From assembly GCF_006345805.1 (NCBI RefSeq), contig NC_043010.1:29078001-29142000 (forward strand): a stretch of 64,000 nt of DNA, written 5' to 3'. Numbering within the stretch: the first letter of the stretch is position 1; each line of letters begins with the position of its first letter. Position numbers and translations under genes: made by a program. This document shows, piece after piece, positions 10,770 through 45,787 of this stretch. The stretch comes from Octopus sinensis (lineage: Eukaryota). The notes below the pieces were generated by a model. The model made no database searches. It was not told the DNA's origin and worked only from the letters and a program-made list of their open reading frames with translations.

Positions 10770-13700
10770 ACAAAAGACGAAGGCAGGTGGAAAACAAACG
10801 AACAATTGTATTAGTATGGCGCTCAGGAAATATAAATAAAACAAGTCTTTGACGTTTCGAGCCTACGCTCTTCAACAGAAAGATACACAGAGAGAGAAAA
10901 AACACAGAAAGAAGGAGAGAAAAAAAATGCGTGCAGTAGCTAACGAATCAACATGGCGATCTGATTTCGGCCAGAGGTCAAAGATCAAACATGAGACGCG
11001 AGAGCGAAATAAGGGGAGATAATAGGGTTGATAAAAGGGTTGAGGGACCAGCTAAAAGTGCGTGGGAGGGGTCTGGATGTGTGTATGTATAGGGTTGGTG
11101 TATGTATTAGTATGTATAAGGGTGTGTGTGTGTGTGTGTGTGTATGAGAGAGTATTAGTGCGTAAGATTGGTCTGGACGTGCGTATGTATGGGGTTGGTG
11201 TATGTATTAGTATGTATTAGTATGTATTAGTACGTATTGGTATGTATAGGTATGTGTGTGTGTGTGTGAGAGAGTATAAGTGCGTATGCGGGGTCTGGAC
11301 GTGTGTATGTATAGGGTTGGTGTAAGTATTAGTATGTACTAGTATGTATTAGTACGTATTAGTATGTATTTTTAGTTGGTGTGTGTATTAGTATGGCACA
11401 TCATATGTGATGTGATGTGTAAAGTCATGTGGTGTAGTGAGGAGAGAGGGGGAGAAGAGGGGGGGGGAGAAGGGGAGGGGAGGAGAAGGGGGAAGAGGAG
11501 AGGATGGGGGAGAAGGAAGGGGAGGAGGGGGATGAAGGAGGAAAAGGAGGGAGAGGGGGAGAGGGAGTGAGGGAGCAGAGGGAAGGGGAAGAGGGAGGGA
11601 GAAAGAGAAGAGGGAGGAAGGGAGTAGGGGTGAAAGGATGAAGGACTGAAGAAGTAGGGGGGTCGGGGAGAAAGGATAGGTGAGGAGGGGGGAGAGGGGG
11701 GTTAGATGAGGAGGGGGGAGAGTTGAGACCAAATGGCGTATAAGAGCGAAGAGAGAAGATTAATTCCTGTTCACGGCGCAAACGGAATCCGGATGGCCTC
11801 TGTGTAAGGACAAACCGAACACAGATAGGTGTTGCAAGGAGTGACCGGTGGAGCGGAAATGGCGTGAGACCGGTGTGTCGTTCGCAAGGTGGATGTCACG
11901 AAGGTGTTCCGCGAACCGGTCAGCCAAGCGGCGTCCCGTTTGTCCGATGTACAAGGAATTGCAGAGAGAGCAAGAGATGCAATAGATAATATTGCTGGAG
12001 GTGCAGGTGAAGGAGTGGATGATGGGATAGGGTCGATGGTGGGTGCTAGTGAGGCGTGGTGGTGTTGGAGAGGTAAGGGCAAGTGCGGCAACGTGGGCGG
12101 GAGCAGGGGAACGAGCCGGGTTGGGAGGTAGGGTCAGGGAAGGAGCTATGGACCAAAAGGTCTCGAAGGTTGTGGGCTCGTTTGAAAGAGGGGAGGGGTC
12201 GGTTAGGGAAGAGGTGTGAAGTGGACGGGTCGGACTGGAGATGACGGAAAGCTCGAAGAATGGTGCGTTGGAGACGTAGGGTCGTGGGGTGGTAAGTGAG
12301 GGGAAAAGGGAGGCGGGAGACTACAGGGCGGGTTCGGGAGAGAGAGCAGATACACGGTCCACGGACCGTGCTCTGGCAAGGGCGGTGTGGATAGTGGTGA
12401 GGGGGTATCCACGTAGGGTGAAGTGGTGAGCCATACGTTGAGACTGAGTCTCAAAGTCATGGTCGTCACTACAGAGCCTACGTAGACGGAGGAATTGGGA
12501 ATAGGGGATGGAAAGCTTGGTGTGTTCTGGGTGGGAGGAAGAGAAGTTGAGGTATGAGTGTGAGTCTGTGTGTTTGTAGTGAATGGAGGTGGTAAGAGTG
12601 GAGTGAAGAATGCTAACCGAAATGTCGAGGAAGGAGACAGAGGTGTTGGAGATAGTGGAAGTGAAGTGGAGGGCTGGATGGAAAGATTGGACGAAAGAGA
12701 GGAAGGAATCTAGATGTTCGCGGGAGAGTGAGGTGGCACCGATAATGTCGTCAATATAACGACCATATAGTTCAGGAGTGGGACCAGTGAAATTAGAGAA
12801 TATTTGGGCCTCAACATAGCCAACGAACAGGTTCGCATAGTTGGGGCCCATTCGCGTTCCCATGGCCACTCCCGAGACCTGATGGTAGAACTCGCCCGCG
12901 AACGAGAAGCAGTTCAGAGTAAGGACAAGTTCGGCCAGACGAATGAGTGTGGAGGTGTCAGGTACAGGGTTAGAGCGGAGGTCAAGAAGTGTCGAAGGGC
13001 CTGCAGTCCTTCGTGGTGAGGGATAACAGTATAGAGGCTTTGGATGTCCATAGTAAAAAGGATTTTGGAGGAGCCGGGAGGAAAGGAGAAAGAGTTGAAA
13101 AGCCGGAGAGCATGGTTGGTATCGTGGATGTGGGAGGGAAGAGATGCCACTAGGGGGGCAAGGACACGGTCGAGGTATTTAGAGATGAGCTCCGTGGGGC
13201 AGTTACAGGAGGAGACGATGGGGCGGCCAGGGTTGTGGGTTTGTGGATTTTGGGGAGGAAGTAAATGGTGGGGGTACGTGGGGTTCGCACAATTAGGTTG
13301 GATGCGGTGCGGGGGAGACGGGAGGAGGACGAGATGAGGTCTTGGACGGTAGAGGATACCGTCTGTTGGTAGCTACGTGTGGGGTTAGAGGGCAGAGGGG
13401 AATAGAAGGAGGTGTCATTGAGTTGGCGGAAAGCCTCGGCCCTATAGAGGTCCGCGCGCCACACCACTACAGCTCCACCCTTGTCAGCCGGTTTGATGAT
13501 AATGTCAGCGCGCCGTTGGAGGGAACGAAGAGCCAAGAGCTCAGCCGGGGAGATGTTGAGGCGGCGTTGGCGTCTGGAGGAGAAGTTGAACCGCTCCAAT
13601 GCACGCTGACAAGCGCCCGCGAAAAGATCCACTGCTAGGATCTGGCCAGGGGCAGGCGTCCACGGGGATGGTCGGCGGCCCAGGCCAGTGAAGCAGTCGT

Positions 13701-15574: not shown

Positions 15575-15605
15575 GCATGTTTATTTGGTGGATATTATAC
15601 TGTAG
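15575..15605 (+). CDS. Candidate 31-nt micro-exon (ACLFGGYYTV, phase 0 to 1)
   Basis: Acceptor ttctctttttacag, consensus donor AG|GTAAGT; phase 1 end matches the module exons. Reading frame is inferred. Confidence 0.5.
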
Positions 15606-17032
15606 GTAAGTTAAATTTTCTTCTCCTATATCTTCATAAAATAATTAGACATTCACTAAGTCCGGCACTAACGCTCTGGACGCAAGCTAATAGTGAGACT
15701 ATTTGTGTTATTTTCAACATAACTATTGTCTTTTGTACGTTGTAGGAAAGCCAGGATAGCTATTTAAGGACGTATATACAGTTCTATACAATTTAGATTT
15801 TCTAATATACCATTTTCATAATTCTTGAGAGATTCCTCTATCACCTGGTTACTGATACAGTTACATACCAAACCATAGATGTACGTATAATGGTGAAGGA
15901 TATGGATGTCGCTGATAAAGCAGAAAAAGCGGTACTTCATATTTCCCTCGAAATATTTCTTGAGGCATCGAGTTATAGATACGTATTGACATATCACTCT
16001 AAAAATAGTTTGACACTCTACAGCATGGCTGGCGAAGTCATTGCACACTAGCAAAATCTCTAAAAATCTAAACGAACTGATTCAAACGATTAGATTAATA
16101 CAGGAATTAAATTAATTTAAAAGACCAATGGACTTATAAAATATTTTTCACAGAGCGTGGCTGCAATATCCCAGACGTAAAATTAAAGCCAAACAACTGA
16201 GCATCCCATCATTTGTTTTGGAATATATCCAATACCATATTATTAAATGACTCCTTCCCTAATTTTAATGCAGTGCAGGAATAATTTGAAGTAGATTTTC
16301 GCTTTTCATAGCGCAACATTATATTAATATTTGATAGTTCGATCATGAAATTTTAGGATGGCCTAGGAAAACGACAGCTGAGCGGAAGATTATTTCCATT
16401 GTGAGGAACAGCTGCTCTGACATATAACTCACTAGATTTATACAATCTGTCCAGTGGCAAATCACGACAAATGAGTTTGTCTGAAAATGAAGGAACTTAC
16501 AAAAATGGATACAGTAATCACCATGTCCCACAATATTTTCAAACTTGATGTTTGTCCTGGCTACAAAATGTAACATCTAAGACAACATGATAGTTAAGTT
16601 ACTACTTGCATCAGTTACACACATTGACCCGCTGCCACCAAATTGGAAGATGTGGAGATGAAGATTATCATTTTTTCCTGGCATCTTTTGAATGAAATGT
16701 GAACGTGCCACTAAATATACACACCGTGCATGTGTGGCCATAGATTCCTTTGAGTTCATTCGTATTTTGACGGGTTTGGTTTTTAATCCTGTGTGGTACC
16801 CAAAATCACACTTTTAACGAAGTAAGTTTGAATTAAAATGGTCTTGTAAATTAGTCGTTGACGATTTGGCAACACAAGATGTACTAAGTTATATGTTATT
16901 GGAAACATTCCAAAGTGACTTATGATATATTTAAATACAGATAAATAGAAAAAGTAGTATTTTTGTGCTTCTTTCCCTTCATATTTTTGTCAAAGCAACT
17001 CAATATTAATACCATTTTATTTTGTTTTATAG

Positions 17033-17281
17033 GGATTGGAACCTATAAAATATTTCTAAATAAAAATATAACTGGACTAAAACACGTACAAAAAGTGAAA
17101 CGCTTATCGGAATGCGTGAACGCGTGTGGAAACACGAGAGACTGTACCTGCTTATATTACCAACAGTCTAATTCTTCATGCAGTTTTTTCGATTCATATG
17201 ACTGTAATAGAATTTTAAATTCTAAATTACCGGAAACAAATGATACCACTACCGTACTGATGGTTCATCATGATGGGAAAG
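17033..17281 (+). CDS. Exon A1: PAN/Apple-like module (phase 1-1, 249 nt)
   Basis: ttttgttttatag acceptor, G|GTAAGT donor. ECVNACGNTRDCTCLYYQQSNSSCSFFDSYDC fits C-x3-C-x5-C..Y..C; N-glycosylation sequons NIT, NSS, NDT. Confidence 0.85.
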
Positions 17282-17688
17282 GTAAGTGAATAGCTTATTT
17301 ATTCATGTGATTCTTCGTTAACTAATTAAGAAGTTCTGGGTTTACAAGTGAGAAAGATTGGCTGTTGGCAAACTATTGATAAGTCGAGACAGCACTCAAA
17401 TTTCAAGTTGTATGAAAATTATTTTCAACATCACCTTTGTCTTTTGTACGTTGGGAATCGCATGAATATCAAAAAGTTGTATAATATATTTCTTTTACTT
17501 TCTTTCTACTTCTTCCTTTCGCCCTTTCTTCTTTCTTTTTTCTGTCTTCATTTCTTTTTTCTCTTTTCCCACAGTCTTCTTTTCTAATATATTATTTGTT
17601 GTTCTTTCTTTATTTCTTCCTTTTCTTTCACCCTTTCTTTTCGTTTCTGTCTGATGACCCTTATTCTGTTTTCTAATCTTTATTGTAG

Positions 17689-17919
17689 GCAAAATAAAGA
17701 GAAGCAGTGATTACCAAAAAATCAACAGCAGTGTGAAACATCTAAATATTACCTTCCATGATTGGTTTTGTGAAAATCTATGTTCTTTGAGTCTGAACTG
17801 CTGTGGTTATTCTTATCAGTATGGCCGGTGTCAGTTACTTGCCATGAATTATTGTTACAAATCCACAAAAGTCCTCCTCTCTGATGGAAGCTTTATTGAT
17901 CTAAGTACACCCATAAAAT
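17689..17919 (+). CDS. Exon B1: PAN/Apple-like module (phase 1-1, 231 nt)
   Basis: ctttattgtag acceptor, T|GTAAGC donor. FCENLCSLSLNCCGYSYQYGRCQLLAMNYC has the same C-x3-C-x5-C spacing; sequons NSS, NIT. Confidence 0.8.
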
Positions 17920-19465
17920 GTAAGCGGTTAGTTTTATGTTAAAATGTATTTGATTTTTAAAAAAAATATTTTATAAGAAATGTTAGCGTAATACTTATGA
18001 CCCTGTTCAGTGTACTTGTGACTGTTGATAGAGAACAGAGGAAGTTATTCTCAAGCAAGAGACTTGATCACAGTGCTTGCAACTCCCACTAATGTAACCC
18101 AAGGACCAGGTAAAAGTGTAAAACTTAGTGATGGATTGTCTATCAACCATCAAGAGAATGTTCTCTTCGACAGACTTCCACACATATTTTCTTACCTAGC
18201 AGTTTCCACCTGCACGAGATTTGCGGCTAGGATATGTGTATGCGAGACTTTGTGGGTGTGTGTGTTTGTCTGCATGCATTTATATGTATATACATGTATG
18301 TGTGGGTATAATACAAGTGAGAAGACGAAGAATGAATTTATCACAAATTTATTAGTTACAATTGTTTCGGTACAACTTCGCTTCGAACGCCATTGCACGC
18401 AAACTGGATGTAACACGTGTGGTTGGTTAAGGCGGCGAGCTGGCAGAAACGTTAGCGCACCGGTCGAAATGCTTAGCAGTATTTCGTCTGTCTTTACGTT
18501 GTGAGTTCAATTCCGCCGAGGTCGACTTTGTCTTTCATCCTTTCCGGGTCGGTAAATTAAGTACCAGTTGTGTACTGGAGTCGATATAATCGACTTAATC
18601 CGTTTGTCTATCCTTGTATGTCCTCTCTGTGTTTATCCCCTTGTGAGTAGTAAAGAAATAGGTATTTCGTCTGTCGTTACGTTCTGAGTTCAAATTCCGC
18701 CGGGGTCGACTTTACCTTTAACCCTTTCGGGGTTGATAAATTAAGTACCAGTTGTATACTGGAGTCGATCTAATCGACTAGCCCCCTACCCCCACAATTT
18801 CGGGCCTTGTGCCTTGAGCAGAAAAGAATATGTGTGGTTGGTTGCATGGAGTAACACTTGATGAGACCAGCATCATGTTCTGCGTTCTTATATTGTACGA
18901 TGTACATATGTTCTATGTTCCTTATATAGTGGGGGACCTGATGATAAGTATGTAATTATGATAAAAATCATGTATAAAATGAAATAAAAACAAGACACCA
19001 ATAGTGATGATAAAAACAAGAAAATAAAGATGAGTAAACAGAACAACCCCCAAAGAATTATAAACTAGCATCGATACAAGAGTCATCTTAGTGGTACCAG
19101 TGCCACAGAATGTATATTGGCAGTATACAGTTTGGAGTGAATCGCAAATATAAATAGTGGCGGGCCACGGTGAGAAAATAATGAAACTAGCAACAATTAT
19201 TGGATGGAGGAGGGAAAGATGATGGAAGAATGGGGGAGAATGTTGTAGGGATAAAATATATAGATATACATCAAAACATTTACCAGTAACCTTCGGCGCT
19301 GGCAGCGGAATGTGACGGTGAAAACAGATTTCACAGAAATAAGTTGGTTAAAAATAAATGAATTAAACTAAAATAAATTTAAATTAGAAAATGGTAAATT
19401 AGAATAAGTTTAAATTAAAGTGAAAATTAAATATTAGTATGTATAAATATTAAACGAACAGACAT

Positions 19466-19985
19466 TAGGTTGTTTCGAAAATAATGGCCGCTTTAAGAGT
19501 TGTGTTTTAAAACGCAATTTTATCATAGTTTTTAAATTGTATTTTAGGTTAATTTCAACATAATTAATAATTGATGTATGCTCCTTAATAATTTTCTACT
19601 TATTTCGGACATAAAACTTTCTTGAAGCATAGGCGCCCATAATTATGAACATGAAAAAAAAGACCTTTGCTTACTTTTTTCTTGCATGAGTTCAAGCTTG
19701 GACACAATGCCTCCCAAACTGCTGTCACTATCAACAGAGCATGGGAAGAGGGGTCCACAAGTACGAAGGTGGTTTCAGAAATTCCGTAGTGAGGATGAGG
19801 GCCTTGAAGATCAAGAAGGTAGAGGACGGTCATGCAGTCTTGACAATGAACAAAACCCACGTCAAAGTGTCAGAGAAATGTCTCAGGCACATGATGTCGG
19901 TATTGCAACGGTCTTATGCAATCTGCAGAAGACTGGTAAGGCGAAAAACTCAATAAATGGGTACCGCATGAGCTCAGTGAAAATA
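19466..19985 (+). mobile_element. Truncated mariner (Hsmar1-like 5' half)
   Basis: TIR-like ttaggttgtttcgaaaataatggccg; FKLGHNASQTA..VRRWFQKFRSEDEGLEDQEGRGR. Confidence 0.75.
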
Positions 19986-19999
19986 AAAAAATAAGAATA

Positions 20000-20612
20000 T
20001 AAAAAATCTTTGGGTTTATGGAAGGCGTTCGTGTGGTGCTCATACGATGGCAAAGAGGTGGCGATTCGTTGCAGTTACACGATACGAATGCAAAAAAACA
20101 ATGTTGTCAGACAGCTGCTACAAACGGACCAGCGGAAAGGCAGGTTAGGTATCACATATTTGAGGACGTTTCTGCTGCCTTCGATTACCTCAAGTATTTT
20201 TATTCATAACATTAAAGTGACCAATTCAACGGAAAGGATACCAATTTACAAGACACATGGCGGCTACATCTTGCATGAACCCCCTTGACGGCAATATTCA
20301 ACTGCTGACCATTAACCTCCTTCAACTGGGAGCAATCTATCGCTCAAAATCTTCCCTCAGAGGAAACGCTGAAATTGTTCAACTCATTCTCTTCCTATAC
20401 GTTTATCTGTATGCTTCATTCTATGGCTTCATTCGCAAGTGTATGGTTCTGATCTGCACTGGGCTGAAGAGTAAGGTGTTGAAATCAGAAGAGCATTGCG
20501 TGAACGCGGTAGCCGAGGTTGGGCTCAAAATTTTCTCAAGTGTAAGGCCTCATCTTTCCGCAGTTGAATGGTAATTTATTAAGACCCATGCAACGCCGGG
20601 AACTACTGCTAG
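20000..20612 (+). mobile_element. Helitron-like fragment ending in hairpin plus CTAG
   Basis: cccatgcaacgccgggaactactgCTAGt at 20586-20613. 5' limit unknown. Confidence 0.5.
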
Positions 20613-21692
20613 TCACTCTATAAAATAGTTTGACACTCTCCAGCATGGCTGGTAAAGACATTTCAAATGAGCAAAGTTCTGAAAACCTAAATGAACTCAT
20701 TTAAACATTAAGATCAAAATACTAATTAGATATAACTGAATACCTATGATCTTCTGATATCAAAATATAAATTTTTTTCACGGCATGGATACAATATCCC
20801 AGATTCTACAGCAAACGTAAAATCAATGCCAAACAATTCTTGGACATCCCATCATATTTCTAGAATATATGAAGGACTACATTAATAAATGAGTCTTTCC
20901 CGATTTTTTCTACACTGCAGGAATAATTTGAAGTAGATATTCGCTTTTGATAGCACAATATAATACTATTATGTGGTAGTTCGATCATGAAATTTGACGA
21001 TATTGAAGGAAGATGACAGTCGAGCGGAAGATTATTTCCATCGTGAGGAACAGCTGCTCTGACATATAACTCACTAGCATTTATACAATCTGTCCAGTGG
21101 CAAATCAAAACAAATGAGTTTGTCTGAAAATGAAGGAACTTACAAAAATGGATACAGTAATCACCATGTCCCACAATATTTTCAAACTTGATGTTTGTCC
21201 TGGCTACAAAATGTAACATCTAAGACAACATGATAGTTAAGTTACTACTTGCATCAGTTACACACATTGACCCGCTGCCACCAAATTGGAAGATGTGGAA
21301 ATGAAGATTATCATTTTTCCTGGCATCTTTTGAATGAAATGTGAACGTGCCACTAAATATACACACCGTGCATGTGTATATATCATTGGATGGCCTTAGA
21401 TTCCTTTGAGTTCATTCGTATTTTGACGGGTTTGGTTCTTAACCCTGTGTGGTACCCAAAATCACACTTTTAACGAAGTAAGTTTGAATGAAAATGGTCT
21501 TGTAAATTAGTCGTTGACGATTTGGCAACACAAGATGTTGTACTAAGTTATATGTTATTGGAAACATTCACAAATGACTTATGATATATTTAAATACAGA
21601 TAAAAAGGAAAGAGTAGTATTTTTGTGCTTCTTTCCCTGCATATTTTTGTCAAAGCAACTCAATATTAATACCATTTTATTTTGTTTTATAG

Positions 21693-21941
21693 GGTTTGGA
21701 GCCTATGAAATAATTCTAAATAAAAATATAACTGGACTAAAACACGTACAAAAAGTGAAACGCTTATCGGAATGCGTGAGCGCGTGTGGAAACACGAGAG
21801 ACTGTACCTGCTTATATTACCAACAGTCTAATTCTTCATGCAGTTTTTTCGATTCATATGACTGTAATAGAATTTTAAATTCTAAATTACCGGAAACAAA
21901 TGATACCACTACCGTATTGATGGTTCGTCAAGATGGGAAAG
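21693..21941 (+). CDS. Exon A2: duplicated PAN/Apple-like module (phase 1-1)
   Basis: Same splice sites as A1, open frame, 8 substitutions relative to A1. Confidence 0.83.
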
Positions 21942-22337
21942 GTAAGTGAATAGCTTATTTATTCATGTGATTCTTCGTTAACTAATTAAGAAGTTCTGGG
22001 TTTACAAGTGAGAAAGATTGGCTGTTGGCAAAGTCGAGACAGCACTCAAATTTCAAGTTGTATGAAAATTATTTTCAACATCACCTTTGTCTTTTGTACG
22101 TTGGGAATCGCATGAATATCAAAAAGTTGTATAATATATTTCTTTTACTTTCTTTCTACTTCTTCCTTTCGCCCTTTCTTCTTTCTTTTTTCTGTCTTCT
22201 TTTCTTTTTTCTCTTTCCCACAGTCTTCTTTTCTAATATATTATTTGTTGTTCTTTCTTTATTTCTTCCTTTTCTTTCACCCTTTCTTTTCGTTTCTGTC
22301 TGATGACCCTTATTCTGTTTTCTAAACTTTATTGTAG

Positions 22338-22577
22338 GCAAAATAAAGAGAAGCAGAGATTACCAAAAAATCAACAGCAGTGTGAAACATCCAAATATTA
22401 CCTTCCGTGATTGGAATCAATGGTTTTGTGAAAATCTATGTTCTTGGAGTCTGAACTGCTGTGGTTATTCTTATCAGTATGGCCGGTGTCAGTTACTTGT
22501 CATGAATTATTGTTACAAATCCACAAAAGTCCTCCTCTCCGATGGAAGCTTTATTGATCTAAGTACACCCATAAAAT
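22338..22577 (+). CDS. Exon B2: duplicated PAN/Apple-like module (phase 1-1, 240 nt)
   Basis: Same splice sites as B1, open frame, 6 substitutions and an in-frame 9-nt indel (NQW). Confidence 0.8.
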
Positions 22578-22916
22578 GTAAGCGGTTAGTTTTACGTTAA
22601 AATGTATTTGTCTTTTTTAAAACATTTTATAAGAAATGTTAGCGTAATACTTATGACCCTGTTCAGTGTATTTGTGACTGTTGATAGAGAACAGAGGAAG
22701 TTATTCTCAAGCAAGAGACTTGATCACAGTGCTTGCAACTCCCACTAATGTAACCCAAGGATCAGGTAAAAGTGTAAAACTTAGTGTTGGATTGTCTATC
22801 AACCACCAAGAGAATGTTCTCTTCGACAGACTTCCACACATATTTTCTTACCTAGCAGTTTCCTCCTGCACGAGATTTGCGGCTAGGATATGTGTATGCG
22901 AGACTTTGTGTGCGTG

Positions 22917-22965
<49 letters not shown>

Positions 22966-22971
22966 ACGTGC

Positions 22972-23052
<81 letters not shown>

Positions 23053-23779
23053 AATAATACATGTGAGAAGAAGAATGAATTTAGCACAAATTTATTAGTT
23101 ACAGTTGTTTCGATACAACTTCGCTTCGAAAGCCATTGCACGCAAATTGGACGTAACACGTCTGGTTGGTTAAGGCGGCGAGCTGGCAGAAACGTTAGCA
23201 CGCCGGGCGAAATGCGTAGCCGTATTTCGTCTGCTGTTACGTTCTGAGTTCAAATTCCACCGTGGTCGACTTTGCCATTCATCCTTTCGGGGTCGATAAA
23301 TTAAGTACTAGTTACGCACTGGGGTCGATATAATCACCTTAATCCTTTTATCTGTCCTTGTTTGTCCTCTCTGTGTTTAGTCCCTTGTGGATAGTAAAGA
23401 AATAGATGTTTCGTCTGCCGCTACCTTCTGAGTTCAAATTCCGCCGGGGTCAACTTTGCCTTTTAATCTTTCGTGGTCGATAAATTAAGTACCAGTTACG
23501 CACTGGGGTCGATATATTCAACTTAATCCGTTTGTCTGTCCTTGTGTGTCCCCTCTGTGTTTAGCCCCTTTTGGGTAATAAAAAAATAAGAAACGTTAGC
23601 ACACCCAAAATGTTTAGCAGTATTTCCACCGTCATTACGTTCTGAGTTTAAATTCCGCCGGAGTCGACTTTGCCCTTCATCCTTGCGGGTCGATAAATTA
23701 AGTATCACTTATGTACTGGAGTCGATCTAATCGACTGGTCCCTACCTCAAAATTTCAGGCCTTGTGCCTAGGGCAGAAA

Positions 23780-25300
23780 AGACATTTTTCCTTCCAAATT
23801 TCGATGTGTTTTTGATTCTGCTGTGTGTGTTTGTGACGGCGTTGGTGATTGCGATGTTTGTAGCGTTGGTGTTGTCATCAGTGTGTCTGTGTTTGTTTTC
23901 TTTGGATTTCTCCCATTTTTCTGTCTCTTTCTTGTGTGTGTTTTTTCGCCTTTTGGGCTCCCCCACCTCATCATCACTTGGATGCGTCCGTGACTTGTAT
24001 GTTTTCTTCTGGTATTGTTTATTCTGGTTCTCTTGTAGTAGTTGTTGTTGTTGCTCCTGCTACAGTAGCTTCTGCCTCTGTTGCTGGTTCTACTGCCACC
24101 TTTACTGTAACGCCAGCCTGTTTTATCTTCTGGGTCCCATTTCTGCTTCTGTTCCCCTGCCTTTCTGTTGTTGTTTTGTTGTTGTTGTTGTTGTTGTTGC
24201 CGTTGTTCTTGTTTTTGTCGACGCATGGGTTGTGATACTTTCGTTTTGACATTTCTTTCTCTCTTTTTGTTCTGGTTCTGTGGGCAGTAAAACCTAAGTG
24301 GCCCGTTGAACCACAATCGTGACACCTCGGTCTTCTGCCTTCCACGTTCACCCTTAGTTCTGCTCCATTCGAGAGGGAAATCAGGTCTGAGACTTTCTCT
24401 AACTGCTCTGGCTTCACATGGAGATGAACCTCCAAGGTAGTCCCAACCCAATTCCCCCTCCTCGACCTTCAACATCAAGGAGATTCTCTCCGCCGTCCGT
24501 ACGAATACAGGCGAGAATCCACCATAAATCCAGCCCTGGTGAGACTCCAGGTACCGTAGTTCGTACCACCCTTCTTCCCATGTACGTTGGGAAGAAGACG
24601 ATTTCCTCGGTGCGACGCGTGGTCACCGAGCTCTGTATTGCATGCTTCCCAGTCTTAAAAAGGACCCCTACTCCGCCGTACTGCATCGCCCTCGTAATAT
24701 GGTGGATATCCTTTTATATCTCTTTCAAGGATTTTTTCACCTGGTCGCGTTTAGCATTTTCGAGTTTCGTTGTTTTTATGTTCACTCATATGTAGCCAAA
24801 TGTCCGTTTGGCTGTTGCTTCAAGCATGTCGCTTAGAGGCGTCAATTCTGCCCTCCTTCTATTCATTTTCATATATTTTTCTGCCTTATTTAGTTTTCTA
24901 CTTTTCTCTCTATTGTGGAGTTAACCAATTCTTTAGCTGTCGCGCAGAAGTTTCTTTGCCGCCGCTAACTCCTTTTTTTCTGTTTGGCTCTACGCTGTAG
25001 TTGCTTTCAATGTTATTTTGCGTGCTGCTCCAATTTCTATGTTACTCCTTCCTTTCGATTTCTTTCTGCTTTTCCCCTTCTTTCTTCTTTCCTTGACTCG
25101 TCACTTCTTTTTTTTCCTTCTTTTCTTCCTACTGTCTCCTGCCAGTCATGGGGGGGGGGGGTCCTCGGGCAATCTGCCGTATCACCTTCCTTCTTCACTC
25201 CCGCTTTTCATCACCATCTTCAATGTTTACTTTCTTCGAAGCAAATTTTCGAAGAAATTTGAAAACAAAAAAAAGGTTTGTATCACCTCAAAAGTGGGGC
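23780..25300 (-). mobile_element. L1/Tx1-like LINE 5' part (ORF1 remnant with zinc knuckle)
   Basis: VEGRRPRCHDCGSTGH knuckle, preceded by a frameshifted ORF1-like stretch (24414-24686) and followed by low-complexity basic sequence. Confidence 0.6.
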
Positions 25301-26816
25301 TTTGATTAACAAACGTCAGCCCTAAAGAAGGTCAGCTGGCTTGCAAAACAATTTAACTAACAAAATACAGTATAGAGCATTTTAAAACAAGTGAATTAAA
25401 CATAAACTTACAACGCTCCAAAAACACACATCCAGCTAGGTGATAATAATAATAATAATAATAATGATAATAATAATAATGATAATAATAATAATGATAA
25501 TAATGATCTTCTCGATGTTCTAGTTTCTCATGGATTAATATTTCCAAGATGATCCCACACCAGTCCTCCCTCCTGCTCCTTTTTATCTCTAAGAGTGGCT
25601 ATGAGTTCTGCACTGTACAGGCAACAATCCTCTAGACACTTACGCTCGGTAGCACGCCATTTACTCTAATTCTGGTCGTTCTCATTGAGAGGTAGGTAGG
25701 ATACAGGACCCACTCCTGAATCCACCGGGCTGACACTGCGTGTCTTCGCGTGAGGTCCTCACTTTTAAAGAGGACTTTAATGCTAGAAAACTGTCTCCCT
25801 CACTATATATAAGCCACACCATTAAAATTTCTCTGAGATCTTCTCCAAATGACTGATAGAGGCTATTTCAGCTCTCCTACTTTTTCGTGATATGCATCTG
25901 AAATATACTGACTTCTCTTTTGCTTCTATTATTTTGAGAGGTACGAGCCCTGCAGCCTTACCCCGCTCAAATTTAATGACGCCATTCGCTTTCAAGAGTT
26001 CACGAGTTTTGCTATTGAGTGGGATGGCAAACATTTCTCTCTCTGTGTTCGCTACATCAGCAAGCCTTTTATTTTTGTTATTGTTTTTGTTGCCGTCGAC
26101 GTTGCTGTTGTTGTTGCAGTTAGTGGTAGTGGTAGAGTTATGACCACTTCTACCGTCGCCCTTCTCACCACCACCCTCACCGCTATTTTCTTTCTCTCTG
26201 CCTTCAATGTTAGCATTATTTCTTATCCGCTAAAATCCGCTGCATTATTAACGTAAACGCTAGCTCTGCTACTACTGTCTCTGCAACCGATGCTGCTGCT
26301 GTTGCTGTTTCTCGCGTTGTTATTGTTATCACTACTACTACAGCTGCTGCCGCCGCCGTCACCGCTGTCATCGCTGCTGCTGCTGCCACTGCCACCGCTA
26401 CTGTTGTCGAGTTTGTCACTGCTGTTACTACGAAATGGACTTAGTACTTTTCACCCTTTCTTTTCTCACCCTCTCCTGTATTGTTGCCAGTAACGGAGAG
26501 AAGGGGAGAGAAATCTTCAACAGTCACTAGAGCTGTGGGAGAGGCAGATTTTCTCCTTAACTCTTTTAAAATGCAACTCCGCAATCTTGTTGAATAGTTT
26601 GTGATTAAACGTCCACCGAACTTATTTTATGGGCTGAATATGGCACAGCGAGAGGCCAAACAAACAGAAAAACCAGTGACAGGTACCTGGTGTTTCTATT
26701 AACAACTTGAAATAAAATGTAAAACGAAACAACCGCACCAAACTGGTGTAAACAAATGTTTTAAAAATGAACATACTTGGAGCGTTCGAAGACACGTCCG
26801 ATGTACCTAGCAGCAA

Positions 26817-26891
<75 letters not shown>

Positions 26892-27009
26892 CAACAACAA
26901 CATGATCTTCCAACCTCTTGTCTCTTGAGGTCTCTGGGTGAGACTTGGAGCCAACTTGTATAAATATAAAGCAAAAGTCAGACATAGAATAATAATAATA
27001 AATGCCCTG

Positions 27010-27555
27010 ATGCAGTTCCAGGCAGCGGCCCTCATGGCTTCTGATCTTAACTGATTGGAAGTGTTATCATGTACATCGTTTTGTCTTGGTATAAAAGATG
27101 GGCTACAGCAAATATTCTGCTCAATACCACAGATTTACTTGTCAGTTGTTTGACCATAACCAGTTGACCATGTCCTTTAGTGGTTGACGATATGTGCATT
27201 TCTGATCAGAAGCAGAAGTAGTGGGGGAGCATCATAGCCGTGTGTTGAAAGGAATTCTTAGAGGTTTGGATAATTCACCTTTGGAAACATGGGTGGTTAG
27301 TTTAACATCCTTAAACAATCCTTATTCAGGGACCTTTTGAGCGGGATGGGCTACTCGACTAGAAGAAAATTCTAACTGGGCCCCACCTGCAAGGTCATGT
27401 GCTGTTTATCTTGATATGAGATCACCATGTTGCGCACATATGGTTGTGATGCTTATGTCTGGTGTACCCTTATCAGACGGGTAGCCATGATGGGTATACA
27501 AAGCTTCGCATAGTTTACCCCAGTGTCACTTTGATGGCATGCACTGCTCTATCAC
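27010..27555 (+). mobile_element. Interspersed ~500-bp repeat (SINE-like); second copy at 54158-54640
   Basis: ctgatcttaactgattggaagtgttatcatg...gggccccacctgcaaggtcatg shared at high identity; both copies lie beside (AAT)n tracts. Confidence 0.85.
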
Positions 27556-27557
27556 TC

Positions 27558-27608
<51 letters not shown>

Positions 27609-27744
27609 CTTTTCTACTAAACACACAAAACCTGGTGAGAGGGGATTAGTCGATTACATCGACCCCAGTGTGTCATTGGTACGTAATTTATCGACCCCGA
27701 AAGGATGAAAGGCAAAGTCGACCTCGGCAAAGAAAAAGAAATAA

Positions 27745-29460
27745 ATAACCTTGGTGCTGAAAGAAGAATATCAGAAGAAATAAGCTCCCCGAACAGTGTA
27801 GTGTCAATACTTGACAGGAAAAGAAAAGGAGAATTCAAGAATTATCACAAATTTGAGACAGTTTAGAAGTAGTATTGTGTTGATATAAAAGGATCGAATA
27901 TCGTATTGAAGAATTAAAGCAGCACAAACTTGCCAAGAAAGCAAAGCTAAATTGGTTGAACGGATTAAACAATACCGGAAAAACCGATTGTTTAGAATCG
28001 ATCAAAAAAGATGTTATCAAGAAATTGATGGTGATACAGAATGCAAAAGTTTAATCCTTGATGCTGAAGAAAGTAAACAGTTTTGGTGTAAGATATTGAA
28101 GAAGCATGAAGAACACAATTCTGGAGCTGAATGGTTCTGTAGCCTGAAGCAAATAGCTTCTTAACCCCAGCAGGGAGGTTTTCATTTTAACTAAGAAATA
28201 TGAGCAAAAAGATGAGCAACTAGAAAGCAACAGGACCTGATGGTGTACAGGGTTGTTGTGGGTGCCATAAATTGATTGCAGAGAAATTTAATGCATTGGC
28301 CAAAAGAAGAGATCCCGAAGTGATTGACCAAAGAATGAACAGTGTTGTGCTTGAAGGATGTATTGAAAGGAAATGCTGCCGACAATTACAGTCCAATTTC
28401 TTGCCTTCTATTAATGTAGAATTTATTGTCAGGAGGGATTGCAGGAGAAATCTACACATTTATGTAATTTACATTATTTACATTTGACGGTGTTTGTTGT
28501 TAACACAACGTTTCGGCTGATACACCCTCCAGCCTTCATCATGTGTCTTGGGAGAAATTTCGAATCTGGGTTCTCATTCCTATGTAAATAATGTACATAA
28601 TTCCTAATATTTTAAAATATAGAACTGTATTATCTAATCGGTACGGAGCCAACATTAAACTTCAGTGGAGACATATAGAGAAATTCCATCAAAAACTACT
28701 TCGTCTTTCAAATCATCTAACTTTCTTGTGTAGATGTAGAGACTTAATACCTTAGGAATGAGAACCGAGGTTCGAAATTTTCCCAAGGCACTTGGTGAAG
28801 GCTGGAGGTTATATCAGCCGAAACGTTATGTTAATAACAAACAAGATGAGGACAAATATCCGTCAAATGTAAACAATGTAAATAATGTACATAATTCCTC
28901 ATCTCTTAAATATAGAACTGTAAAATCTACACATCTTTTGATGATAACATCTTAATGATGGAACAAAAGGGTTACAAGAGGAGATGCAGAGGTACCAAAG
29001 GCCAATTATTGATAGACAAAATGGTAATGCAAGATTGTAAGCGAAGGAGGACAAATTTGAGAATGGCCTGGATTGATTGCTGCAAAGCTTACAATGTAAT
29101 TATATGTTCATGCTTTGATTTGTTTGGAATTGCAAGGAATGTAACATATTTTCTGGAAAAGTATGGTGTGATGGAAAACTGAGTTGACATCTTACGGACA
29201 AAGCTTGGACACCCTGGGCATCAGGAGAGGGATTTTCCAAGGAGAGAACTTATCTCCAATGCGTTTTGCTCTTTGTATGATTCCCCTGACCTTTGGGCTG
29301 AGGAAAAGGAATTTCGGATATCAGTTAAAGGGAAAATCTCAAAGAATCAACAAGCTCCTCTTCATGGATGATTTGAAACTGTATGGCGAGGAGGAGGTAC
29401 AAGTGAGTGCTTTAGTAATCACAGCCCACTGTTTCAGTGCTGACATAAAGATGGAATTCA
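27745..29460 (+). mobile_element. R4/Dong-like non-LTR RT pseudogene, interrupted at about 28450-28925
   Basis: [73 protein letters not shown]. Confidence 0.85.
28465..28920. repeat. Inverted pair of PLE pseudo-LTR-like segments (28465-28582 vs about 28752-28880)
   Basis: taggaatgagaac..gaaggctgg..tatcagccgaaacgtt present in opposite orientations, with degenerate hammerhead cores (ATGATGA and TTGGTGA...GAAAC). Confidence 0.75.
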
Positions 29461-29913
29461 GATTCAGATTCTTTTTCGTTCCCTACCTCTACTCTAGTTG
29501 TTAAGAATACGACTCTCTCCCGTAATTCTTTCTTCCTTCTTATATTCTTATCTATTCATTTCTCTCTTTATCTACTTCCCCTTACCCGTATAATTCTCAA
29601 AATTCATTTATATTACAAGATCCTTTTGAATGAACAACACATGGAATAAATATCTGCATTTGAAATAACAACATATGAATTCTTATCGGACTTAACACAT
29701 CATGGACAAGAAGATTATTTACCCATTCTACACAACACATTTCTTGGATAACAGAACAGTATCTTTAACATCCAACATGTATTTTTATTTTCATACTTTC
29801 CTTTTATACTTTCTGTGTTATATCTAATTTCTTGTACATCTTTCCCTCTCCAGAACAACTTCTTATAAATAAATGATCTCTACTATTACCTTCTATTGAA
29901 GCTCTTTTAACTC

Positions 29914-29961
29914 GTCTCTGATGATGGAATATCATTTATTTCCCCGAAACAGCTGTAAGAC
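29914..29961 (+). ncRNA. Type-I hammerhead ribozyme motif (PLE-type minimal)
   Basis: GTCT-CTGATGA-[tggaatatcatttatttcccc]-GAAACAGCTGTA-AGAC: canonical core, stem I GTCT/AGAC, palindromic stem III ACAGCTGT. Stem II is imperfect. Confidence 0.7.
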
Positions 29962-30033
29962 AACCTTTCTATTTATAAATGTACTAGGAATATCAAATTG
30001 CCCTGGCCTTACCTTATTTAACATATTATATAT

Positions 30034-30092
<59 letters not shown>

Positions 30093-30199
30093 ATCCTCGG
30101 CGCGCGCTGGGGGCTTGGTCGGCCCCTTGGGCTTGCGTTGTATTGCTTGTGCGTTGTGTGCGTGAGCGCGCTTCGTGTGTGTGGGCTTGCTTCGGATGT

Positions 30200-31760
30200 G
30201 CGCGTGCGTATGTATGCATACATACCCACACACTCGCATGCATCCCTACCCACATACATACACGCATACCTACTCACACACACACATACACACACACACA
30301 CATACACACACACACACATACCCGCACACACACACACATACATACATACACACACATATCTACTTCAGACATACACACACACAGACATACACCCATACAC
30401 TCACACTCACACGCATACACACACACATACACACGCACACGTACACATACACACACACACACCTACATACATACATTACACTTGTACACACACACACTTA
30501 CATTCATACACACACACACCTACACAGCCATACCCTCACTCAGACACACACACCTACCTACACACACACACAAACACACACAGACACACACCCATGCATA
30601 CATACATCTACACACACACGCCTACACACATACATACACACATACATAAACACACACACATACACATACACACACATACGCACACACACATATACTTATA
30701 CACATGCACACACACACATACATACATACACCCATACACATACACACACACATACCTACATACTCCTATACGCACATGCATACACACAGACATACACACA
30801 TACACACTCACACAAACATACCCACACACATACTTACACACACACTCACCTGCACGCGCACACACATGCATGACAAACACTCATACACTCACACTCACAT
30901 ACGCACACACCAACATAAACACGCACACACACACACACACCTACACTCCCACACACATACACACGCACCTACATACACACACGCACGCATACACACGCAC
31001 ACACACGCATACACACATACATTACACACGTACACACACACCTACATACACATGCATACACACACACAAACATGCACGGACACACCCAGACATACATACA
31101 TACACCTATATACACACGCCCAGACACCTACATACACACACATATACACACGCCCACACACCTACATACACACACATACATACACACACATACACGGACA
31201 CACCCATACATACTTACATACATACACCTATACACACACGCCTACACACCTACATACACACACATGCATACACACACACATGTACGCACATACACACACA
31301 TATACGCACATACATATATACCCACACACATGCACACACACATACGCACATGCATGCATGCATGCACACGCGCACACCTACACGCATACACACACACACA
31401 CGCACGTACACATGCATACATACACACACACATACATACACCCATACACATACATGCATCCTACACACACATACATACACACTCACACATACATACATAC
31501 ACACACACTCACTCACACACCTGTATGTACGCGCACACACATGCACATACACACACTTCCACACACCCACACGTACATACATACACACTCATACACATAC
31601 ACACACACACACACACGGACATACATCTATGCACACACATATATACACACATACTCACATACATTCATCGGACACACTGACACCCAGACATACACACAGA
31701 CACACTCACACATCCACACACATACATACTTACGCGCATACTCGCAGGCGCGCGCACACA
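30200..31760. repeat. Long degenerate (CA)/(TACA) microsatellite tract
   Basis: About 1.5 kb of irregular CA/TA dinucleotides; source of the spurious HTHT ORFs. Confidence 0.9.
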
Positions 31761-32844
31761 CGCGCTTGCGCCGGTTCGCGCACGCATACGCGCTGCATGC
31801 ACCTCGCTCTTGGACCCGACGAGACCTCCCGCTCGTTCCTGGGACCGTCGTTTGTCGTTGGGTTTTCCCACGCCCGTCTCCGCGGGACCACTCTTCCATC
31901 TTCCCCTCAGCTGGAGTCCTTTTTCCTTAACCCCCCCCTTTTTTGTTACACACACGCGCACACATATACACACATTGCTTAAATATATACTTTACTCTTA
32001 CACACATTCAATCTACTCGCCATTAATACTACCACGACACTGGACACACACACACACACTACTACTCAACACACGCTGGCACGCTACATACGCCCCCACC
32101 CCTTCCCCTCCCTCCCTTCCTCCTTCCTTCTTTTTCTTACTACTGACCACTGTCTGCTATGCCTACTACTGTCTCGCCCTACCTCACACGCCTACACACA
32201 GACGCACACACTAACACATACATATATTTTTTGTTTTTTTATCTCGCCTCACACACACACATACACACACGCACACGCACACACTGACACATACACACAC
32301 ATCTGTTGCGTTACCAACCTTGTCTCCACTCTTTTGGCTTTAAAAACCTACTTTGCTCTTGTTATCGTAAACAACCGCCTTTCACCATGTGTAACTCGTA
32401 AACACCAGTCGTTTTTTTCTCTATCTCCTGTTGCCCGCTTTGGGATCTTTCTTTCCTCTCTCTTCCTTCTTTATGTTTCCAACGAAGAGCTCCGCTCGAA
32501 ACGTCATACCTTCCTGCTTCCATTTCCTGAGCGCCTATTAATAATAATACTGTAATTGTTCCATTGTTGTTGTTTTTTTGTTTTCCCGTTTGGATTAAAA
32601 TTATATATATATGTATATACATTACATATACATATATATGTGTGTGTGTATATATATATGTATACATATATATGCACATACACGCGCACACTCACATGTT
32701 TATATGTACGTATATATATATAGATATATGTATTTATGTATAAGTATGTATGTGTCTATCTTTTTCTTCTCTTTCCATATGTATATAATATACATCTCTC
32801 TCTCTATATATCTATCTATCTATCTATCTCTATATATATATAGG

Positions 32845-33240
32845 CTCAAACATGGTTGTGTGGTAAGAAACTTGCTTCTTAACCATATGGCTCCGGGTTC
32901 AGTTCTGCGTGTCACCTTGGGCAAATGCCCTCGACGATAGCCTCCGCCTCTGCAAAGTCTTCTACGTAGATTTGGGAGAAAGAAACTGAAAGAAGTCCGT
33001 TGCAAATACTTACACACACACACACACACGCACACATATATGTGTGTGTGTGTGTCTTTGTCTCCACCACAGTTTAACAACCGGTGTTCGAGTGTTTTTG
33101 TTCCCGTAACTTAGCAAAGAGACCGATAGAATAAGTACTAGGCTTAAAAAGAACTGGGATTAATCCATTCGACTAAAACTTCTTCAAGGCTGTGCCTCAG
33201 CATGGCCACAGACTAATGGATGAAACAAGTAGAAAGGTAT
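32845..33240 (+). mobile_element. SINE family A, diverged
   Basis: Head catggttgtgtggtaagaaacttgc..gggttcagttc, body gaaactgaaagaagtccg, tail ccgatagaataagtact. Confidence 0.75.
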
Positions 33241-33258
33241 AAAAACGTCAAAAGATAT

Positions 33259-33308
<50 letters not shown>

Positions 33309-33313
33309 TATAT

Positions 33314-33346
<33 letters not shown>

Positions 33347-33434
33347 TATGTCTGTTCGTTTTCCCTCCTTCAATTTTAAGCTGTTTTTAGAGTTTGTATG
33401 TCTAACTAGGTTTGCCTGTTTTCTTCATTTGAAG

Positions 33435-33928
33435 GGTTATTCGCTGTACCTGATAATGGTGTGACATCTTCTGGTGATTTACCTGGAACCAAGGAAATAA
33501 TAAGTACCAATAGCGTAACTGAAATACACACTAAACCACAAACCAGTTCTACAAGAGGAACCAGTGACAAAATTAAAACCACTGCAATAACACCAGCTTC
33601 TTTAGTGACGTCCACAGCACCCATGTGCTCTTGTGCTTGTGAACATGCGACACAACAGCCTCCCACCAAGAAGGAGTTGGAAATTCTTAAGGATAACTTA
33701 AAAAAAGAGCTTGCCGTGGATAAAAAGAAACTGTCCAAAACAATTCGAGCCAAAACTAGTGCCCCTGACGAACGACGATCGGCTCAAGGTATAGGATTTA
33801 TTGGTGTGATATTCCTATCTGCTGTACCTATCTTCATTATTATTATAGACTTCCCTCAACTCTGTGCAGGCATGAAAACTTTTTGCAGGAATGTTTCTAG
33901 CTTGTGTTCCAACAGAACACCACATTAG
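33435..33928 (+). CDS. Terminal exon: Thr/Ser-rich stalk, CSCAC, basic helix, SAPDERRSA motif, transmembrane helix, short tail
   Basis: Acceptor gttttcttcatttgaag, phase 1, open to TAG. TM segment GIGFIGVIFLSAVPIFIIIIDF. Pattern recalled from many uncharacterised molluscan membrane proteins. Confidence 0.88.
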
Positions 33929-44940: not shown

Positions 44941-45787
44941 TCTTTATATATAAAAGAAAGGTTGTGTGTCTGTCTACTCCGATTTAGATTCCTAACTACT
45001 CCTACATTTTGCGATGCAGTTTAACCAAAACCGAGTATCTTATAGTCGTGATTCATATCGAGCCCTTCTGGGTATTAGCGCGCGTCTACGATGAGTCTAC
45101 GATTTTACAAATAATTTACCATCATTTTCTCCCATTTTAATGCATATTTTTTTTAATAAAGGGAAGTAACTCTCAAACTTCACACCAATATGCGTGCTCA
45201 TATGCGACGTAATATCACATCAGCAGCATTTCCTCACACCATCCTTGCACTTGGCGAAGGCAAAATACCAGGGGATGAAAATGGTAATATTGCCATCGAT
45301 TCCATTTGTACCATTGTTAAGACGCCTTCTGATCTCAGAGATGCAGTGTTCCAAGATCTACAAGCTAATTATCAGAATATGGATTGGATTGGCCAAAAGG
45401 CTATACTGGCCCCGAGGAATAAAACTGTTCACCATATTAATGATGAAATGCTAAAACTCATTCCTGGGGAAGTCTATGTATATCAGTTTATCGATACAAC
45501 TCCTGACCCAGAGGACGTCATCAACTATCCAATAGAGGTACTCAATTCCTTTGAGCACCCCGGACTAACACCACACATTCTCAAACTTAAAGTTGGTGCC
45601 CCTATAATGCTCATCAGAAATTTGGTTCCCCCAAAACAATGCAATGGCACACGTTTGATCGTTAAGTCCTTATCTCCCACCGTAAACTTATATCAATATT
45701 TGCCTGAATAATCATCATAATTCAGTGCAATCATTAACAGTACTTTCAAGCAATTCAGCCCCGAGCAACGCCGGGCAATTCTGCTAG
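44941..45787 (+). mobile_element. Internally deleted Helitron retaining a Pif1-like helicase fragment (ORF 45190-45711)
   Basis: TC start tctttatatataaaag; KAILAPRNKTVHHIN, YPIEVLNS..PPH-like TPHILKLKVGAPIMLIRNL..QCNGTRLIV; 3' hairpin plus CTAG (45784-45787). Confidence 0.9.

Follow-up and report, generated by a model that had tools for sequence, protein, structure and literature searches.

A tandemly duplicated two-exon cassette in LOC118765931, a gene for a probable PAN/Apple-type membrane glycoprotein in Octopus sinensis

The stretch of Octopus sinensis DNA analysed here, 64,000 nucleotides (nt) of contig NC_043010.1 (assembly GCF_006345805.1, positions 29,078,001 to 29,142,000, forward strand; called the window below and numbered from its first letter), contains the gene LOC118765931. 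RefSeq labels its product "uncharacterized protein" and gives neither a name nor a function. The window agrees with O. sinensis chromosome CM016872.1 (GCA_006345805.1) without a mismatch over 43,928 nt. The gene has four module exons, A1, B1, A2 and B2, the second pair being a tandem duplicate of the first, and a terminal exon T that encodes a stalk, a transmembrane segment and a short tail; two further exons at the 5' end are candidates (Table 1).

Table 1. Features of the LOC118765931 region (window coordinates; a slash in a splice site marks the exon boundary).
Feature	Position	Strand	Details
Candidate first coding exon	590-640	+	MALHASCLLEIFLVSCL, signal-peptide start; ATG at 590; 51 nt; donor G/gtaagt; phase 0
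Candidate micro-exon	15575-15605	+	31 nt; ACLFGGYYTV + 1 nt; acceptor tctctttttacag/G, donor TAG/gtaagt
Duplication copy 1	15994-18827	+	upstream intron, A1, intron, B1, downstream intron
Exon A1, PAN/Apple module	17033-17281	+	249 nt; phase 1-1; 6 Cys; 3 N-glycosylation sequons
Exon B1, second Cys-rich, probably PAN-like module	17689-17919	+	231 nt; phase 1-1
Spacer between copies	18828-20612	+	first ~210 nt and another ~76 nt homologous to the intron 3' of B0
Duplication copy 2	20613-23782	+	A2 and B2
Exon A2, duplicate of A1	21693-21941	+	249 nt; phase 1-1; 8 substitutions vs A1, 7 non-synonymous
Exon B2, duplicate of B1	22338-22577	+	240 nt; phase 1-1; 6 substitutions vs B1, 5 non-synonymous, plus NQW codons
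Terminal exon T	33435-33928	+	494 nt; begins GG; phase 1
Ser/Thr-rich stalk	33437-33619	+	61 aa; 36% Ser + Thr
CxCxC	33626-33640	+
Conserved amphipathic juxtamembrane helix and motif	up to 33787	+	…ELAVDKKKLSKTIRAKTSAPDERRSAQ
Internal GT, potential alternative donor	33788-33794 (GT at 33789)	+	CAAG/GTATAG; phase 1; ectodomain/transmembrane boundary
Transmembrane segment	33788-33850	+	GIGFIGVIFLSAVPIFIIIID
Cytoplasmic tail	33851-33925	+	25 aa
Stop codon	33926-33928	+
SINE-like interspersed repeat	18482-18775 (two units, right edge of copy 1); 23225-23732 (three units, copy 2)		184 nt; …GAGTTCAAATTCCACCGGGGTCAAC…
Degenerate (CA)n/(CACA)n-type array	30256-31726		1.4 kb; strong negative GC skew; in the 10.9-kb B2-T intron
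Transposon-derived open reading frames	12321-13632(-), 60940-62064(+), 56304-56711(+), 29184-29504(+), 24019-24435(-), 5753-6211(+), 19686-19994(+), 52909-53448(-), 45190-45711(+)

All four module exons are bounded by a pyrimidine-rich ...ag/G acceptor and a /gtaagt or /gtaagc donor, and their lengths are all multiples of three. The first two bases of each complete a codon, which is GGC where an A exon is joined to a B exon and TGG where a B exon is joined to A or T. The splice-site sequences are identical for A1 and A2 and likewise for B1 and B2. For each of the 16 ordered subsets of these exons the reading frame stays open. An earlier interpretation made without database searches, the sequence-only reading, had proposed these exon coordinates and splice sites, the phase 1-1 modules, the phase-1 terminal exon and the in-frame subsets; reading the sequence again and checking it with a script confirmed all of them.

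Joined to the two candidate 5' exons, the four modules and the terminal exon give 1542 coding nt and thus 514 amino acids, exactly the full model put forward in the sequence-only reading, and the RefSeq protein XP_036364682.1 (isoform X2 of LOC118765931) is contained in it as residues 104-514 with 100% identity. The first residues of X2 are encoded by the last eight codons of A1, the B1 product forms its residues 8-84 (100% identity), and it uses the junctions A1(end)-B1, B1-A2, A2-B2 and B2-T, at which its residues agree with the predicted joins (…DGKG/KIKR…, …PIKW/FGAY…, …PIKW/LFAV…). The N-terminal hydrophobic stretch of the 514-residue model and the single transmembrane segment in the terminal exon give a single-pass type I topology, in line with the earlier description of T as the transmembrane exon of a surface protein. 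The modules together contain ten N-glycosylation sequons. No named gene had been recognised at this locus; the protein is indeed still uncharacterised, but a database identity, LOC118765931, does exist.

The duplicated segment has a period of about 4.64-4.66 kb. It had been claimed that only the A-B pair was duplicated, and the boundaries of the two copies agree with this: both the micro-exon and the terminal exon lie outside. Identity between the copies is uneven, 96-99.5% in the core (16394-18193) and 78-88% in the flanks. The high identity of the cores, as well as the SINE-like repeats (resembling short interspersed nuclear elements) and a (TG)n tract in the flanks, which can mislead assemblers, would suit an assembly artefact, a serial placement of two haplotypes or of a repeat that had been collapsed or expanded. 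The copies, however, carry specific marks, namely Ile versus Phe at residue 2 of A and an in-frame indel of three codons, NQW, in B. Both marks recur in the independently assembled genome of O. vulgaris, where the protein models CAI9732728.1 and CAI9732729.1 have an A module reading GIG… followed by one reading WFG…, and a B module first without and then with NQW, in the same order as in the window. Since these copy-specific differences are shared, the duplication predates the divergence of O. vulgaris from O. sinensis and does not stem from haplotypes placed in series. In addition, Gnomon spliced through both copies, and the spacer behind copy 1 retains homology to the intron between the B and terminal exons of an upstream paralogue, LOC118765932, whose exons we call A0, B0 and T0. 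We therefore regard an assembly artefact as extremely unlikely.

The NQW triplet is found in B0, in both B modules of O. bimaculoides and in the representative protein P0008, and hence it is B1 that carries the change, having lost 9 nt that are present in B2, B0 and the other Octopus B modules. The number of cassettes may vary between species: O. vulgaris, judged from its protein models only, apparently has three A-B cassettes against two in O. sinensis.

The intron between A and B (17282-17688 and 21942-22337) is 99.5% identical in the two copies, with 2 mismatches in 396 nt. Because this intron is nearly identical although the duplication predates the species split, later gene conversion is suggested, which has probably homogenised the core of both copies. 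The exons are 96.8-97.4% identical and have thus diverged further than the intron, with 14/480 against 2/396 differences (Fisher p = 0.009), and nearly all of their changes are protein-altering. Taken as an observation of its own, this difference between intron and exons points to gene conversion, to selection for exon change, or to both.

In the spacer, 83% identity was found to positions 13302-13611 of L001, the CM016872.1 locus sequence, which there is the B-T intron of the paralogue. Since the sequence following copy 1 resembles the intron downstream of B0, the original unit probably extended over all ~4.6 kb, and copy 2 would later have lost its distal part to other sequence; this region contains a gag-like CCHC open reading frame (ORF) on the minus strand. 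A similarity of about 82-88% at the right edge (18261-18830) was rejected as part of the duplication proper, being largely SINE-like repeat and (TG)n. The SINE-like repeat is present in nine copies in the window, including, besides those in Table 1, copies at 6982, 27643-27727(-), 36034 and 41037, and may have served as substrate when unequal exchange created the duplication or altered its size.

The paralogue LOC118765932 is located upstream, about 25-35 kb from A1 and outside the window, and contains a single A0-B0-T0 set. Together with its O. bimaculoides orthologue LOC106880439 it is among the closest known counterparts of LOC118765931: exon types, phases and splice-site sequences are the same and the anchor is nearly identical, whereas only one A-B pair is present and the stalk is unrelated in sequence. 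A0 is 56-60% identical to A1 and A2, and B0 is 60-64% identical to B1 and B2. Because LOC118765932 has a single pair, one A-B pair is the ancestral state and LOC118765931 was extended internally. The duplication has thus lengthened one gene instead of producing a new paralogue, as the sequence-only reading had argued; the RefSeq protein runs through B1-A2-B2-T while the neighbour keeps one set. Homologues of A or B outside Octopus were not found in the protein collections searched.

Module A can be assigned to the PAN/Apple superfamily, which includes PAN_1, PAN_3, PAN_4 and MANEC and is represented by the HGF N domain, the N-terminal domain of plasminogen, the apple domains of FXI and prekallikrein, and MIC4 and SML-2 of apicomplexans; its common core consists of a C-x3-C helix, against which an antiparallel sheet packs, and a beta hairpin with disulfides. 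A1 reaches 22.2 bits with the Pfam model PAN_3 (cut-off 21.1) and stays just below the threshold for PAN_1 (19.9, cut-off 21.4), so that the margin is narrow. PAN_1 matches five of the six A-type sequences (best E = 1.7e-4) and PAN_3 three of them. In the PDB, a profile of the A-type sequences retrieved 6ryv through its PAN domain (E = 5.6e-4) and MIC4 through its apple domain (E = 0.011). The cysteine pattern C-x3-C-x5-C-x-C-x9-C-x7-C is invariant in all six and aligns with the PAN cysteines in both HMMER and hhalign.

The predicted structure points in the same direction. An AlphaFold2 model of A2, with a predicted local distance difference test score (pLDDT) of 72 and a predicted template modelling score (pTM) of 0.63, shows strands, a helix (25-33), a hairpin (40-53), a second helix (55-63) and a strand (74-79), and it superposes on members of the superfamily. 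In a Foldseek search of the PDB with this model, 50 of the 50 matches listed were PAN/apple-type folds, among them the HGF N domain, plasminogen, FXI, prekallikrein, SML-2, MIC4, an Eimeria PAN module, MANEC, SRK and leech anti-platelet proteins. The Foldseek probabilities ranged from 0.54 to 1.00, mostly at least 0.9, and the query-normalised TM-scores from 0.43 to 0.64. On this predicted fold and the profile matches together we accept module A as a PAN/Apple domain, the profile search (PAN_3 above its cut-off) and the structure prediction having both agreed with the earlier assignment. As in FXI with four apples or SML-2 with two, the modules would be extracellular, glycosylated and arranged in tandem. 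They differ from the known members in that the similarity is marginal, at about 20 bits, and that A and B have six cysteines each with a spacing of their own; in contrast to classic apples, a disulfide closing the N- and C-termini is not evident, and neither a catalytic nor a kringle partner domain is present. In the literature nothing specific was found on octopus or cephalopod PAN/apple genes.

For module B the relationship is more distant. B shares the C-x3-C-x5-C...C-x7-C register of A, and in both exon products the first cysteine is at residue 28. Compared directly with A, B scored P = 0.003 in hhalign (probability 10%); with a PAN-domain profile built from mollusc proteins that combine a C-type lectin domain (CTLD), a PAN domain and an anchor, it reached P = 7e-4 (probability 27%), which equals the score of A. 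In UniRef, the O. bimaculoides protein P0158, which consists of B plus T, carries the name "Apple domain-containing protein", a label that presumably goes back to a PROSITE profile. The best Foldseek match of a modelled A2-B2 pair was the two-apple lectin SML-2, at a non-significant E of 0.08. Module B is therefore probably a divergent PAN-like domain, although this is not settled: the sequence-only reading had taken both modules for PAN/Apple domains, which holds for A on the strength of PAN_3 and the fold model, and for B only in part, with register, hhalign score and UniRef name in favour and the Pfam search against.

The most widely distributed part of the protein is encoded by the terminal exon. 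A phmmer search returned 746 representative proteins at E ≤ 1e-3, nearly all of them matching the anchor part and not the modules. Their consensus reads C.C.C ... ELtVdKk.LSStiRKKTSApD.RpSAqgIGyvG ... D, and all elements of the corresponding test motif, CxCxC, ELxVxKxxLSxxxRxKTSAxDxRxSA and a transmembrane segment starting with Gly and ending with Asp, are present at 33626-33850, where the segment is preceded by …LSKTIRAKTSAPDERRSAQ. This Gly and this Asp are invariant in 149 of 149 sequences; across the same set, the three cysteines are conserved in 89-92% and the D, R and S of SAxDxRxS in 96-99%. The ectodomains to which the anchor is attached are unrelated to each other (CTLD plus PAN, IgGFc_binding, EGF, Ephrin_rec_like, PLAT), and all named carriers are molluscs, namely oysters, mussels, scallop, clam, periwinkle, sea slug, cuttlefish and octopus. 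A Pfam model covering the anchor was not found.

Among these carriers, the mollusc CTLD-PAN-stalk-anchor proteins (for instance Mytilus edulis XP_071119850.1 and the clusters P0019, P0022, P0025, P0026 and P0036) are particularly similar in design, having a PAN domain, a Ser/Thr-rich stalk, CxCxC, the helix, RKKTSAxDxRxSA and a transmembrane segment as in LOC118765931. They differ in combining a C-type lectin domain with a single PAN domain, a remote relative of A and B (hhalign P ~7e-4). In the three O. sinensis genes compared, T, T0 and that of LOC118767087, a PLAT gene on another chromosome, stalk and anchor are encoded by a single phase-1 terminal exon, which fits the spread of the anchor as a cassette by exon shuffling. 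If its function in oligomerisation, shedding or sorting can be worked out, this would provide an annotation for hundreds of mollusc surface proteins. The terminal exon of LOC118767087 (positions 12010-12951 of its locus sequence, L002) also contains an extra in-frame copy of a 47-residue stalk repeat without counterpart in the RefSeq protein; it may be a short intron or, alternatively, a stalk repeat that varies.

Modules and anchor evolve at very different rates. Between the two A-B copies, 12 non-synonymous and 2 synonymous changes were counted, giving a ratio of the per-site proportions (pN/pS) of 1.5, without a significant departure from 1. In the comparison with the paralogue, the ratio of non-synonymous to synonymous rates (dN/dS) is 1.07-1.31 for A0 against A1 and A2, 0.66-0.68 for B0 against B1 and B2 and 0.50 for the terminal exon, and in the anchor helix plus motif there are 0 non-synonymous and 3 synonymous changes. 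A conserved anchor thus bears a rapidly changing, presumed binding part, a combination that fits diversifying selection as well as weak constraint. The gene, or its extra cassette, could accordingly be drifting without function, as a neutral recent duplication under relaxed constraint. The copy ratio and the A-type values would be expected in that case, and the lack of homologues outside Octopus and of a signal peptide in the RefSeq models points the same way. On the other hand, cysteines, the NKNITG sequon, splice sites and reading frames are intact in all four exon copies, in the paralogue and in three Octopus species; B, the terminal exon and above all the anchor helix show dN/dS values or substitution counts that argue for constraint; and the duplication has been retained since before the O. 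sinensis/O. vulgaris split. We consider drift quite improbable.

The gene models at this locus raise the question of where the transcription unit begins and ends. Isoform X1 (XP_036364681.1) starts inside A0 (L001 9918-10163) and is joined about 35 kb further on to B1 (17689 = L001 45535), so that B0, T0 and A1 are skipped. It has the appearance of a chimeric model or of transcriptional read-through. The two O. vulgaris models splice the terminal exon of the upstream paralogue, at a site (...ERQSAQ/G) equivalent to the internal GT of T, onto A1. CAI9732728.1 ends ...ERRSAQ/EPDKPRK... and so also uses the equivalent GT of the counterpart of LOC118765931 itself; its alternative C-terminal exon, EPDKPRKILSCICLPEK, was not found in the window. 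If the internal GT in T were used as a donor, the membrane anchor would be lost and a secreted or fused form would result. These models would be explained by a larger transcription unit in which read-through from LOC118765932 fuses the modules and the paralogue array acts as one pool of exons, and the same phase-1 GT is indeed present at 33789. However, automated annotation frequently merges paralogues lying in tandem, LOC118765932 has a gene annotation of its own within the span of X1, and LOC118765931 has a plausible signal-peptide exon of its own far upstream of A1. Taken together, we think a read-through unit unlikely.

This candidate first exon encodes MALHASCLLEIFLVSCL, which is 53-56% identical to MALHRLCLMAILLITVL, with which the model of the O. 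vulgaris paralogue begins (tblastn E = 0.002-0.004), and a hydrophobic window spans residues 1-30 of the 514-residue model. The candidate micro-exon shifts the frame from phase 0 to phase 1, as needed to join A1. Among 15 frame-compatible AG...GTRAGT candidates between 641 and 17032 it is the sole one with at least 11 pyrimidines in the 15 upstream positions. At the equivalent place the O. vulgaris paralogue has eight residues, without sequence similarity to those of the micro-exon. The RefSeq models contain neither exon, and that both belong to the gene is plausible but unproven. Positions 2261-2287 of L001, considered as a micro-exon of the paralogue, were discarded since splice sites and phase do not fit.

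The sequence-only reading had further suggested that splicing combines the module exons in different ways (A1B1, A2B2, A1B2 and others), resulting in a variable ectodomain. Such a use would be compatible with the open frame of all 16 subsets and with the functional difference between the copies implied by the 12 non-synonymous against 2 synonymous changes and by the divergence of the exons beyond that of the intron. Unusual joins have at least been modelled, with X1 passing from A0 to B1 without A1 and the O. vulgaris models joining exons of the paralogue. Yet frame compatibility is generic: phase 1-1 exons are the usual design of extracellular modules (Patthy's exon-shuffling rule), and since in-frame subsets arise automatically with phase 1-1 exons of 3n length, they carry no information on splicing. 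Both RefSeq isoforms contain B1-A2-B2-T together, and a product with a skipped cassette was not encountered in the protein collections searched.

Nor was a mechanism found at the locus that would enforce a choice between exons, be it RNA pairing, steric hindrance or reading frame with nonsense-mediated decay (NMD). Splice sites of the duplicated exons are identical, and inverted repeats of at least 24 nt, candidates for docking and selector sequences, are absent between 15600 and 23800. Exclusivity by NMD is not expected because inclusion of both copies keeps the frame, and steric exclusion is not expected because the introns are long (396-407 nt, 3.8 kb and 10.9 kb). Tandem exon duplication with mutually exclusive splicing is known from the Dscam1 exon clusters and from many vertebrate and insect genes. 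With these arrays the locus shares adjacent homologous exons of equal phase that arose by tandem duplication; in contrast to them, the unit is an exon pair, both copies are found jointly in the annotated mRNAs, and selector or docking sequences and steric or frame enforcement were not found. Mix-and-match splicing is thus unsupported but not refuted, and we judge it decidedly unlikely. Constitutive inclusion of all four modules would be the default expectation and is the best-supported reading of the annotation.

We suggest the following course of events. The ancestral gene, whose design is kept by LOC118765932, may have comprised a signal peptide, one A exon, one B exon and one terminal exon with a mucin-like stalk, CxCxC, the amphipathic helix, the juxtamembrane motif, the transmembrane helix and a short tail. 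Before O. sinensis and O. vulgaris separated, some 4.6 kb with A and B would have been duplicated in tandem, and the extra pair could be accepted in frame because all exons are phase 1-1. Spliced constitutively, it would yield an A1-B1-A2-B2 ectodomain, in which four heavily N-glycosylated PAN-type modules are displayed off the membrane on an O-glycosylated stalk. Binding of proteins or carbohydrates by PAN/apple domains is established for FXI, HGF, MIC4 and SML-2, and for this reason a role in surface binding or recognition can be guessed; by analogy, a cell-surface binding protein with glycan or protein ligands is most likely. The anchor may provide oligomerisation or control of shedding. 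It is tempting to speculate that CxCxC and the amphipathic helix form disulfide-linked oligomers, and the resulting multivalent display would be useful for weak glycan binding.

Overall, LOC118765931 is probably a member of a small Octopus-specific tandem family of type I single-pass membrane glycoproteins, extended by the A-B duplication, spliced constitutively as A1-B1-A2-B2 and acting in binding at the cell surface. Several points weigh against this interpretation. A dN/dS near or above 1 for A and the 12:2 ratio equally fit relaxed constraint or a decaying gene. The Gnomon models, on which constitutive inclusion is based as annotation only, are 5'-incomplete and lack a signal peptide, and X1 looks chimeric. 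The alignment behind the AlphaFold2 model of A2 consisted of the six A-type sequences, and the best Foldseek E for A is only 4e-3, the others being weaker. For B, neither the six B-type sequences nor P0158 or P0008 gave a Pfam match, a meaningful sequence match in the PDB was not obtained, and the AlphaFold model of the A2-B2 pair has a pLDDT of 45, with 27-49 in the B part. The O. vulgaris cassette count, finally, comes from models with odd, shortened junctions.

The duplication of a two-exon cassette is ordinary, textbook exon shuffling and not a new mechanism; what the locus offers is a lineage-specific PAN/apple surface protein with a clean and datable instance of such growth. Modules that change at or above the neutral rate on a strongly conserved anchor, with a cassette number that apparently differs between sister species, form a pattern known from recognition molecules in immunity, gametes and settlement. 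In the snail Biomphalaria, GRC and PTC2 form clusters of tandemly arranged, lineage-restricted genes for type I membrane proteins with highly divergent ectodomains, in which no known domains are reported and for which a role in recognition has been proposed (PMC7494358). They are likewise clustered, fast-evolving single-pass genes of a mollusc, an analogy only. A more far-reaching view would be that the Octopus A-B genes are young, rapidly evolving recognition receptors, the binding surface of which is diversified by exon change, by gain and loss of cassettes and by splicing between paralogues or via the phase-1 GT with longer or secreted products, on a shuffled, as yet uncatalogued anchor exon found throughout the molluscs. 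We regard this view as conceivable but rather doubtful.

The remainder of the window contains repeats and transposon-derived sequence, and 3' of position 33928 no other cellular gene was seen in it. The (CA)n/(CACA)n array gives rise to long spurious ORFs rich in His and Thr. The transposon-derived ORFs comprise reverse-transcriptase-like and gag-like CCHC sequences, mariner-type helix-turn-helix (HTH) fragments and a helicase-like fragment. One of the reverse-transcriptase-like ORFs, at 29184-29504(+), was tested against profiles and matched RVT_1 with E = 3e-5; of the HTH fragments, the one in the spacer at 19686-19994(+) was tested in this way and matched HTH_32 and HTH_48 weakly. A GC-rich, GC-skewed block at 10-15 kb coincides with one reverse-transcriptase-like element.

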